Under the pieces are notes generated by a model, which was not told where the DNA came from, searched no databases, and worked only from the letters and a program-made list of their open reading frames with translations. A stretch of 64,000 bases of DNA from Orbicella franksi (taxonomy: Eukaryota): NCBI GenBank assembly GCA_964199315.1, contig OZ116706.1, positions 8,990,001 to 9,054,000 on the forward strand, written 5' to 3'. Positions within the stretch are counted from its first letter, which is position 1. Each line of letters opens with the position of its first letter. Position numbers and translations under genes: made by a program. This document shows, piece by piece, positions 57,701 to 60,700 of this stretch.

Positions 57701-60700
57701 AACACCCTAAAAGGTACCAAAACCGCTTTTTTAACCTCTAAAAGGCACGACGAACACCCCCGTCCTTTTTATATGGGAGTCTCACCCGGGGGATTTAAAT
57801 CCACGCTCCCTTTGGTGATCTTCTGTTCCTCTTCAGAATGAGGTACCCTGACAACCAGTTTCTTGCGCATCACTTATGTTGATCGAGGATTACACCCTGC
57901 GCCACATATCACTACTTCAATTTTGTCTTTGGGAAATGGAGTTTCTGAAGGCATCTACCCTTTCCGCCTTCCGTACCTTCTCAATTGGCTCTCGCCGCTT
58001 TTCAGCTTTCAATATTACACATATGTCAATGTCGCACGTGTTTTCCCCCCTTTTACCGCTTCCTTAGGCTTATAGAATCTCCGCTCCCCAAGCTGATTAG
58101 CTTCTCTTTCTGCAACCCTTCCGCCCATATAATTATATAAACTTTCATGCTGACTAAAACGATTTCGATGTATTTTAAGGTTTTTGGCAAGGTGGCCGGT
58201 CGTCTTGATCCCCTTTCCTTGGGGGTAAGTTTCTCCAGCTTGGAAGGGATTCTACGAACAATCCACGCCGAAACAAAAGTTGATTGGAAGGAGATATTTG
58301 ACGGATTTGTAGTATCTGGAACATTTGACCAGCTAAAGACAGTACGTGAGTTATTAATCTGTCATTTGGAAGAGACAAAGAAGCACAAAAGCGAGCGTAC
58401 CCCAAAAGACGGTAGAAGGCCATTGGTAAGAGACATGACAACTACAAGAGAGTCCATGGTAGGCAGCAAAGTTTCTACAGGGTCAACCAGTCTTCGCACA
58501 CCTTCTATTTGCCAATCAGAGGAGATGATCGACAAGGTCTCAGGACGAAAATACAACAATCGTTCGATACCAAACGAAAGTCAGGTAGAACGGAATGAAA
58601 GCCATGGCAACCCGCACGGTCTAGTAGAAAACGAGAGAATGAGGGTAAGTGAGAATGCCAAGAAGCTGGATCAAGCCGATATCACTAGTGATGCCTCGAA
58701 CACAAGAAATGATAGGAAAAAGCGAATCGAAGATCAAAAAGAATCACAAAGCGAAGGTATAAGTCGACCCACGCCAGTAACTCCATCCTCAAAGAAGCAA
58801 TTTGTATTTCTTGAGAACAGCACAGAGAAAACAAGTGGAGGCGGACATCTCAAGACAGGAATCGATGATAATGCTTCACCGCCTTCACGGGTCTCTGCAA
58901 TTGGAAACACAAGCGGTAATGGAACAAGACCAGAAGACCAAGGAGAAGACCAAGACCAAGACCAAGACCAAGGGGATGTTAAGAATCTGTTGACATCAGT
59001 CAAAATGCAGGAGATGCCCCTTGAAAGCAGCAAAGGAAAAACTGATAGACCTACGCAACCTAACCGAAAGCGTCCTGCTGGACTACCCGATAAAAATGTT
59101 AATTGTGAAGACCTACAGTCTAGTCTACAGTCTAATAGAAGTTGCGACGCCGATAAAACAACTTTGATTGTACCAGTTTTAAACGAAGCTTCTGATCAAG
59201 AAAACCAGTCATGCTCTCATCTGGAGAGCTCCAAATCTGACCAGTCGTTATCCAAAGGGCTTGGCGAATACACCACAGATGTGAACTCTTTAAAGTACAT
59301 CACATCCACAGGTATCACAGTATTGTTGCAGATAGGAGACATAACCAGCAGCGACGTAGACGTTCTTCTTAGTCCTGCCAACCCAACTCTTTCTTACAGG
59401 GAAGGAGTACCTCAACTGATTCTGGAGAGAGGAGGCTCTGTCATAAAAGAAGAATGCCACAACATCGCTAAAGCTGAATGTCCACTGCAGTACGGTGCTA
59501 CATTCCTCACTTCATGTGGGAACTTACCATGCAGAGGCGTCCTTCATACAGTTCTGCCACCTTGGATCAGAGACGACGAAAACCAAAGAGCATATAAACG
59601 TCAGATCCACCGACATCTTACCGAGGGACTGGTACTGGCATCAGGATATAGACACAGATCGGTTGCTCTTCCACCATTAGGGCAAGATGGGAATTGTATT
59701 CCCCTTGAGGTCTCTGTAGAGGTTATTACTCGTGTCATTGCCAAGTTCAGTGACAAAGTTGGCCCCATGCACACTGGAATCAATGACATTCGTATAGTAT
59801 GTGAAGATGACGCCACTATGAATGCTTTTGCAAAAGAACTGTCGTTTTTTTCCTTTCGAGGTGATGAACCATATTTTAAGATGACACCATCAAAGAACGA
59901 GCTTGGAGGGGAAGACGTAATTCCAAAATACCAACGCACGGGAAGAAGTCGCCCCAAATGTGATGAAGGCGTCGATTCGTCAATTGCCACTGAAAAATCC
60001 GTGGAGCAAATTCAGAAGGCAACTTCATCACCTGTAAAAGGTTCTTTTCCAAATACAGAGAATGCGCAGATTCTTACTAGCGACCCCAAGATCGAAGTAG
60101 GCGCGTCCTCTCAACTCAAACCTCAGCCTGATAGCGCAGCAATTCTGCCTGTTGTTAACGGAGAGATGAAAGACGCTTCTTTGAATAACTCAAGGCAATG
60201 TCACGAAAACACTACCACGGTCATTTCAAGTAGCGTTACAGAAAGTACCGACAATTCAGAGGCAAGCGTGTTTGAGATACTGGAAGTGACATCGACAGCC
60301 ACAGTTGCGCTTGTAGAAGAGGTCGCAAAACGAGTAACTGCGCAGAATAACTCAGGCAGGAAGTTGGTGAAGGAGTTCAACTTGAAAGTGGACCAGGAAA
60401 ATTTTGAAGAACGAAATGGAAACGTAGCTGAAACCAGTGAATTGCTAGAAAAATTATCAGCCCTAAAAATTACAAAGGCGGTGACACCGGAAATTCAACA
60501 GCCTAAACCCTCGCCCTTTTCAACTACGAAAGAACAAGGCAAAGGAATTCCTGGAAGTGAACCTAGCCATTTTCAGAGTAGCTTGAAAGACACCCAAAAT
60601 CTCGATCCATTTCAAAGTCGTGCGCATGAGACAACAGATGCTCACAGCTTAAATTCTTCTTTGTTAAGAATGGATAATGACCTTTTCGTGACTTCACCTA

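Follow-up and report, generated by a model that had tools for sequence, protein, structure and literature searches.

Introduction

In humans, DTX3L and PARP9 are transcribed from a common bidirectional promoter, and the KH2-KH3 module of DTX3L binds PARP14 (Kar et al. 2026). Orthologues of DTX3L carried a macrodomain, which was lost when PARP9 emerged, and the DTX3L-PARP9 arrangement dates to after the divergence of lungfish (Picard et al. 2026, bioRxiv 10.64898/2026.04.23.720386). Here we describe a DTX3L-like gene of the stony coral Orbicella franksi. It lies in a stretch of 64,000 nucleotides (contig OZ116706.1, positions 8,990,001 to 9,054,000 of the forward strand), which we call the window and number from its first letter. 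The gene encodes a macrodomain, a RING and a DTC domain in one chain, and both the macrodomain and the DTC have replacements at positions used elsewhere in the family for ADP-ribose chemistry. We lean towards the view that the protein neither hydrolyses ADP-ribose nor joins ubiquitin to it, and that it is a RING E3 or scaffold co-regulated with PARP14 whose macrodomain and DTC are altered modules.

To be a hydrolase of the MacroD type, a macrodomain needs an Asn or Ser and a Gly bordering loop 1, along with a hydrophobic residue followed by an aromatic one in loop 2; hydrolase activity has been shown for macro 1 of a coral (Stylophora) PARP14 (Delgado-Rodriguez et al. 2023, PMC10221186). Within the DTC, residues His582 and Glu608 of DTX2 are described as strictly conserved in DTX proteins and form a hydroxyl-His-Glu relay. 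The pair is needed for ubiquitylating the 3'-OH of ADP-ribose, and the E608Q substitution markedly impairs ubiquitylation of ADP-ribose and NAD+ (Zhu et al. 2022).

Results

A single gene of six coding exons

One open frame on the plus strand, 58147-61143 (998 codons), contains the segment at 59290-59845 that a preliminary description of the window had singled out as a Deltex E3 ligase with a built-in macrodomain. We place this frame in the third exon of a gene of six coding exons and 1310 amino acids:

54533-54758, plus strand: coding exon 1, with the start codon and the first part of the RRM (RRM_PARP14_3, E-value 1.4e-9, and NID; N-terminus collinear with orthologue P0014; donor G/GT)
57248-57333, plus strand: coding exon 2, end of the RRM (57310-57331 joined to 58180 in contigs of runs X1 and X5; AG acceptor, GT donor)
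58180-61081, plus strand: coding exon 3, 2902 nt, with the KH-like domain, linker 1, the macrodomain and linker 2 (a single X5 contig covers 58178-61081; both ends spliced; continuous frame)
61679-61915, plus strand: coding exon 4, 237 nt and in frame, with the RING at 61711-61836 (RNA joints on both sides; eight Cys/His ligands)
62327-62738, plus strand: coding exon 5, with about 55 residues of RING-DTC linker followed by most of the DTC (PF18102, E-value 1.7e-30)
63239-63308, plus strand: coding exon 6, with the end of the DTC and the stop codon (RNA joint 62738>63239 in X1, X5 and reads of X23)

All six exons have canonical splice sites and the frame stays open for the full 1310 residues. 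The encoded order is RRM, KH-like domain, a linker of about 300 residues, macrodomain, a linker of about 490 residues, RING, a linker of about 55 residues and DTC, and the model is collinear with the NCBI model of P0014.

The RNA evidence comes from coral (meta)transcriptomes, namely one contig set from each of two studies and two runs of raw reads, mapped on 57700-63600. Spliced contigs of X1 and X5, two independent studies, carry GT..AG joints at 61081>61679, 61915>62327 and 62738>63239, placing macrodomain, RING and DTC on one transcript. The last of these joints is also present in two raw reads of X23, which covers the stretch at 1-3x; X21 covers almost none of it. A contig that begins at 58178 has 5' letters matching 57310-57331 and thereby joins exon 2 to exon 3. 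Exon 1 was placed by collinearity with P0014, and its junction with exon 2, which lies outside the RNA-mapped stretch, rests on the orthologue models. Contigs that bear the joints have read depths of 148 and 49-98, similar to those of the exons. The depth is 22-35 in contigs retaining intron 3. The 2.9-kb macrodomain exon is thus spliced to the RING exon, as the preliminary description had supposed.

That description had also raised the prospect that transcripts end before the RING exon, which the spliced contigs contradict. Two separate genes, one for the macrodomain exon and one for the RING and DTC exons, or a decaying pseudogene, would account for the contig gene callers' listing of the 998-residue frame alone, for the intron-retaining RNA contigs and for domain scores that are low for the family. 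However, RNA of two studies joins all the exons through canonical splice sites in an open frame, the frame is intact in more than 30 orthologues, the ratio of nonsynonymous to synonymous substitution rates (dN/dS) is below 1 in every segment, and P0014 has the same full-length architecture. On the strength of the spliced RNA, the open frame and the dN/dS values we rejected both ideas, which we regard as highly improbable.

A related transcript-derived protein, P0037, has RRM, KH-like domain, macrodomain and DTC without the RING exon. Because exon 4 is 237 nt long and in frame, a RING-skipped isoform is possible; no RING-skipping joint was seen in the window's RNA data. Separately, two segments of about 30 nt, 57749-57780 in intron 2 and 61312-61341 in intron 3, have RNA-contig depths 10-100x those of the exons, with unrelated flanking sequence in the contigs. 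They are probably pieces of a dispersed repeat or of abundant unrelated transcripts.

A macrodomain with remodeled loops

The macrodomain and the three motifs discussed below are placed as follows; the motifs were defined by column counts over 33 divergent and 13 canonical DTX macrodomains:

59263-59883, plus strand: macrodomain (Pfam Macro match at 59374-59724, AlphaFold2, Foldseek, dN/dS)
59371-59409, plus strand: macro loop 1, SPANPTLSYREGV (canonical N-A-x-N ... G-G-V)
59671-59703, plus strand: macro loop 2, PPLGQDGNCIP (canonical P-A-I-S-[ST]-G-[IV]-[YF]-G)
59761-59778, plus strand: clade-specific motif GPMH[ST]G

The Pfam Macro profile (PF01661) matches residues 410-526 of the open frame with an E-value of 2.7e-14 and 53.6 bits (range 53.6-56.7; cut-off 22). 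Among solved structures, the top sequence matches are PARP14 macro 1 (3q6z, E-value 3e-15; 3vfq), PARP9 macro 1 (9qyd, 1e-13), YmdB and macroH2A. Modeling of 59263-59883 with AlphaFold2 on 46 aligned homologues gave a mean predicted local distance difference test score (pLDDT) of 90.2, a predicted template modeling (TM) score of 0.87 and the alternating beta/alpha order of a macrodomain. Foldseek aligns the model to macroH2A1.1, PARP14 macro 1 and macro 2, PARP9 macro 1 and MacroD2 at TM scores of 0.79-0.89 and probability 1.00. We are confident, on this modeling, that the segment folds as a three-layer alpha/beta/alpha macrodomain. The complete macro-fold sequence announced in the preliminary description is therefore borne out by profile, model and structural alignment: the searches it had proposed match both Macro (PF01661) and Deltex_C (PF18102), its structure prediction returns a macro fold at the pLDDT given above, and the motifs it quoted (GDI, SPAN, REG, TSCGNLPCRGVLH and ALPPLGQDGN) are all found in the stretch.

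The fold is intact, and the column counts show consistent replacements around the ligand-binding loops. In loop 1, the first Asn of canonical members is Ser or Cys in the divergent clade, the Ala that follows it is Pro in 33/33, and the residue before the last Gly, canonically Gly, Ala or Ser, is Glu in 22/33. The window's own loop 1 (SPAN ... REG-V) keeps the second Asn and the last Gly, has Ser for the first Asn and has Glu before the Gly. Outside the loop, the Gly of HAVGP is Leu in 32 of the 33. Loop 2 changes from S-[ST]-G-[IV]-[YF]-G to G-Q-[DHE]-[WG]-N-x, with the Gln in every divergent sequence and the Asn in 31/33. Its hydrophobic-aromatic pair is absent, the aligned positions being G-N in the window and W/G-N across the clade, and its conserved Gly is Asp in the window. 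The motif GPMH[ST]G has its Pro, His and last Gly in 33/33, in a region that is variable or gapped in canonical macrodomains. These counts agree with the three motif changes named in the preliminary description (NAAN to SPAN, GGG to REG and GIF to DGN).

Because loop 2 falls short of the published hydrophobic-aromatic requirement, the window macrodomain is unlikely, as judged from its sequence, to be a hydrolase; the preliminary description had likewise called it probably not one. We also considered whether the loop 1 Glu reproduces the binding-null Gly-to-Glu mutants PARP14 G832E and PARP9 G113E. This was rejected: the last Gly is retained here.

A divergent clade under purifying selection

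In a maximum likelihood tree of 49 macrodomains, the window sequence and 32 relatives make up a monophyletic group (100/100), with a stem 1.27 substitutions per site long. Their sister group is the coral canonical macro-Deltex macrodomains (96/85), and macro 1 of the window's own PARP14 comes next. An exhaustive HMMER scan of 1.8 billion representatives leaves an identity gap, with about 15 representatives at or above 45% identity to the query and all others at or below 37%. The homologues come from Oculina patagonica, Desmophyllum pertusum, Montipora foliosa and many coral-metagenome contigs. The window copy falls in a discrete clade of divergent paralogs, which arose from a canonical coral macro-Deltex gene. 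Three named species, all scleractinian (Oculina, Desmophyllum and Montipora foliosa), are the basis for the clade's range. The vertebrate frame implicit in the preliminary description does not suit a host that is a stony coral with stony-coral homologues. In some coral relatives (P0015, P0016, P0021, P0023 and P0026), the long exon encodes the divergent macrodomain plus linker two or three times in tandem.

Compared with three orthologous loci by the Nei-Gojobori method, the macrodomain has a dN/dS of 0.25-0.36 and the linkers have 0.58-0.71. The macrodomain is under purifying selection, and we conclude from its low ratio that it is maintained and not decaying.

These data bear on an account different from the one we favor, in which the protein is a working one-chain reader-ligase: the macrodomain would bind ADP-ribose or a close derivative on PARP14-modified targets and bring the RING to them, with the loop changes tuning specificity. 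Its macro fold is intact with high confidence and under purifying selection, the nearest solved relatives bind ADP-ribose, the Asp of GDI, the loop 1 Asn and the last Gly are mostly kept, and the gene adjoins that of an ADP-ribosyl transferase. Yet loop 2 is without its conserved Gly and its hydrophobic-aromatic pair and has gained an acidic or His residue beside the phosphate site, no member retains the first Asn or the Ala of loop 1, and the HAVGP Gly is replaced in 32/33. The second ADP-ribose site of the family, the DTC, is likewise missing a His that contacts ADP-ribose. We regard this account, which is also the function proposed in the preliminary description, as possible but no better than tentative, weakened as it is by the divergent status of the paralog and by the replaced DTC catalytic residues.

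A complete RING and a DTC with replaced catalytic residues

The RING (61711-61836) has the pattern C-x2-C-x14-C-x2-H-x2-C-x2-C-x10-C-x2-C, with all eight Cys/His zinc ligands. It matches zf-RING_2 (E-value 1.7e-6, 28.6 bits, cut-off 27.3) and zf-C3HC4_2 (4.5e-6). The DTC profile PF18102, with a cut-off of 25, gives 106 bits on exon 5 alone (1.7e-30) and 141 bits in P0014, and the closest DTC structure is that of DTX3L (3pg6, 5e-37). Between RING and DTC, counted from the last RING Cys to the NQPPG of the DTC, lie about 55 residues compared with about 10 in canonical members. Relative to the canonical paralog P0044, bit scores are lower throughout: 54-65 vs 93 for the macrodomain, 141 vs 203 for the DTC and 23-29 vs 42 for the RING.

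We aligned the C-terminus of P0014 to the structures of DTX3L, DTX2 and DTX1 and mapped three residues to the window:

62707-62709, plus strand: Glu1278, aligned at DTX2 His582 and DTX3L H707
63240-63242, plus strand: Asn1289, aligned at DTX2 His594 and DTX3L Y719
63282-63284, plus strand: Gln1303, aligned at DTX2 Glu608 and DTX3L E733

The His582/Glu608 pair, called strictly conserved in DTX proteins, is thus absent from the window DTC. Glu occupies the His582 position at all seven clade loci checked, and Gln occupies the Glu608 position at the four whose last exon was read.

Such regularity suits the idea that both remodeled pockets recognize a different ligand, such as another nucleotide-derived signal or modification, so that the protein has a new reader-ligase specificity instead of a loss; this idea overlaps the other readings. 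The replacements are conserved (Q in 33/33, N in 31/33, the loop 1 P in 33/33 and the H of GPMH in 33/33), the E...Q pair of the DTC is kept in two coral subclades, and the long stem with low dN/dS beyond it is consistent with rapid change that later gave way to constraint. Against it, no ligand can be named from the sequence, the GPMH loop is probably on the face opposite the canonical cleft, judging by strand order, and protein-protein interfaces would give the same pattern. We consider a changed ligand doubtful.

A proposed RING ligase or scaffold with altered modules

In the reading that we favor, loss of ADP-ribose hydrolysis and of ubiquitin-ADP-ribose formation, the protein would no longer remove ADP-ribose and would no longer ubiquitylate its 3'-hydroxyl. 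It would work as a conventional RING E3 or as a scaffold, co-expressed with PARP14. The PARP14-like neighbor keeps three macrodomains of canonical appearance, among them a macro 1 of the kind that is an active hydrolase in another coral, and the protein's own macrodomain and DTC would serve as altered recognition or interaction modules.

Several observations weigh against this reading. Macrodomains hold phosphates mostly through backbone amides, and altered side chains are therefore no proof that ADP-ribose binding is lost. Parts of the binding site are kept: the Asp of GDI in 27/33, as the preliminary description had noted of this adenine-contacting residue in the window, the second loop 1 Asn in 25/33 and the last loop 1 Gly in 27/33. 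The classical binding-null mutants presumably change that last Gly to Glu, and the window's Glu lies one position earlier. This Glu also varies within the clade (E22, S5, G2, K2, V1). In the DTC, a carboxylate at the His582 position could in principle act as the base, which would mean changed chemistry rather than none. Finally, the KH2-KH3 module through which human DTX3L binds PARP14 (Kar et al. 2026) was not detected in the window protein, and what points to a partnership with PARP14 is the gene arrangement together with the analogy to human DTX3L.

If new conserved residues, Gln/Asn in macro loop 2 and Glu/Gln for the His/Glu of the DTC, had rebuilt both the macro cleft and the DTC pocket so that they read or change a target that is not canonical ADP-ribose, with a promoter common to this gene and PARP14, the locus would be a natural example of an ADP-ribose/ubiquitin module switching its substrate. 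We think this combination unlikely.

A divergent PARP14-like neighbor

Upstream of the DTX3L-like gene lie a second gene, on the opposite strand, and a short intervening region:

33424-54051, minus strand: PARP14-like gene with RRM exons, KH domains, three macrodomains, WWE and the PARP catalytic domain (Pfam exon matches, exon open reading frames, macro sequences)
54052-54532, no strand: shared 5' region of the divergent PARP14-like and DTX3L-like genes (start codons 485 bp apart)

The two genes are head-to-head, with the PARP14-like start codon at 54048-54046, 485 bp from the DTX3L-like start codon at 54533. Synteny was checked on the ENA contigs L013, L015 and L016. The same head-to-head layout occurs at two distant coral loci, L013 and L016, where the first-exon open reading frames are about 0.4-0.5 kb apart; L013 is about 32% identical over the long exon. 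Within the shared region, at 54114-54171, there are words resembling an interferon-stimulated response element (GAAAACTGAAAGC), a gamma-activated site (TTCCGAGAA) and a kappaB site (GGGAAAGTCC), seen by eye only.

N-terminal domains, linkers and the rest of the window

The N-terminal RRM is of the PARP14 type, and RRM_PARP14_3 matches it at 1.4e-9 in the window and 2.5e-16 in P0014. Behind it lies the following domain:

58180-58374, plus strand: KH-like domain, beta-alpha-alpha-beta-beta-alpha (AlphaFold2 model of P0014:1-175)

In that model, residues 98-167 of P0014 take up the order of a type I KH domain at a pLDDT of about 90, preceded by the RRM fold. We call this second domain KH-like as a prediction from topology only. 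The Pfam KH and KH_DTX3L profiles do not match the window-clade protein, whereas canonical members carry KH_DTX3L.

The linkers that flank the macrodomain consist of 69-77% disorder-promoting residues and evolve fast. Composition and model therefore agree with the placement given in the preliminary description, in which the macrodomain sits between a KH-like region and the RING, amid long disordered linkers. One element of linker 2 is conserved:

60682-60765, plus strand: 28-residue motif, TSPTVEALL.ADL.LG.QGL (P0014, P0042, P0037, P0036)

Identity around this motif falls to 19-26% while the motif itself is retained, a pattern of conservation that may mark a docking motif.

Elsewhere in the window, three open reading frames on the plus strand (21412-22158, 16219-17889 and 29362-30321) are probably transposon remnants. 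One has a weak match to a reverse-transcriptase fragment (RVT_1, E-value 2.5e-4), and the other two, both long, have no Pfam match. There are two runs of N, at 20165-20364 and 28370-28530.

Comparison with known systems

Is a Deltex ligase with its own macrodomain a novelty? When the RING-DTC end of the Oculina orthologue served as query, annotated Macro+RING+DTC proteins, often with RRM_PARP14_3/NID, were found in Amphimedon, Montipora, Porites, Mya, Solemya, Antedon, Saccoglossus, Branchiostoma and Ciona. The layout thus occurs in sponges, corals, molluscs, echinoderms, hemichordates, amphioxus and Ciona, and in at least six further genes of the O. franksi genome. It is a widespread and already described ancestral form of DTX3L. 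The preliminary description was right that a single gene and chain unites the parts, and its Rosetta-stone logic holds; the claim of novelty does not, as the architecture is common among invertebrates and is stated by Picard et al. With annotated members in many invertebrate phyla, the layout is already catalogued as common, an outcome that the preliminary description had itself named as refuting its idea. A literature search on coral or cnidarian DTX3L found nothing specific.

The fused counterpart of PARP9-DTX3L is therefore correct as a description, is already in the literature and in public annotation, and raises no new question. What remains of interest is a doubly remodeled coral paralog and its conserved head-to-head pairing with PARP14.

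The closest relatives of the window protein, in both macro and DTC trees, are the canonical invertebrate macro-Deltex proteins. Those of Montipora capricornis (P0044), Porites evermanni (P0045), Branchiostoma, Ciona, Saccoglossus and Amphimedon have the same order of PARP14-type RRM/NID, KH-like domain, macrodomain, RING and DTC. Canonical members have N-A-x-N ... G-G-V and S-x-G in the macro loops, IHHKT ... [YF]GYPD ... KEEL in the DTC, a RING-DTC linker of about 10 residues and a KH_DTX3L match. In the window clade, by contrast, the macro loops read S/C-P-x-N ... x-E-G and G-Q-x-x-N, the DTC reads ELKT ... NGYPD ... KQL, some 55 residues separate RING and DTC, and the linkers are long and disordered.

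Within the same genome, contig C13 carries an array of at least eight macro-Deltex paralogs at about 2.53-2.75 Mb (L001-L006, L009-L011 and L014), with PARP14-like genes in the same region. Scans for DTC and Macro found at least five canonical 'IHHKT' DTC exons there, each with a canonical macro exon about 2.5-5 kb upstream of it; three further copies are variants. One class in the array combines a canonical macrodomain with a variant 'ELKT...KTQL' DTC, and one copy reads 'IHLKT'. The L014 class has the same H582-to-E and E608-to-Q replacements as the window, but its macrodomain is fully canonical (VNAANEWLQHGGGV, AISSGIFGMP) and, at 125.8 bits, is the genome's best Macro match. The DTC tree separates the 'ELKT' copies, the window and the L014 class, from the 'IHHKT' copies with 97/93 support. 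Because the DTC change is also found in a class that keeps a canonical macrodomain, these sequences suggest that it is older than the change in the macro loops. One genome thus holds a natural experiment: canonical macro-Deltex genes, a class changed only in the DTC triad, and a class changed in both the DTC triad and the macro loops. A biochemical comparison of these coral classes would reveal the residues on which the reading of ADP-ribose and its ubiquitylation depend, and would tell whether some other chemistry belongs to the variant DTC.

PARP14 macro 1 is the best solved sequence match to the window macrodomain (human 3q6z), is the nearest PARP14 macrodomain in the tree and has the same fold (TM 0.79-0.87). 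It has all the hydrolysis residues of loops 1 and 2, whereas the window macrodomain has neither the first Asn nor the loop 2 pair. In the PARP14-like gene of the window, macro 1 has the sequences VNAANSNLHHVGGV and AISTGVYDFP.

With human DTX3L-PARP9, the locus shares a DTC most like that of DTX3L, a PARP14/DTX3L-type RRM at the N-terminus, divergent transcription from a short region together with a macroPARP gene, and a pair that combines macrodomains with RING-DTC. The differences are as clear. The human macrodomains lie on the separate PARP9 chain, whereas the window macrodomain is in the same chain as the RING and DTC, and human DTX3L keeps H707, Y719 and E733 where the window has E, N and Q. 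The head-to-head macroPARP/DTX3L pair occurs in cnidarians as well, which bears on the age of the regulatory coupling; the neighbor is PARP9 in human and PARP14-like in the coral.

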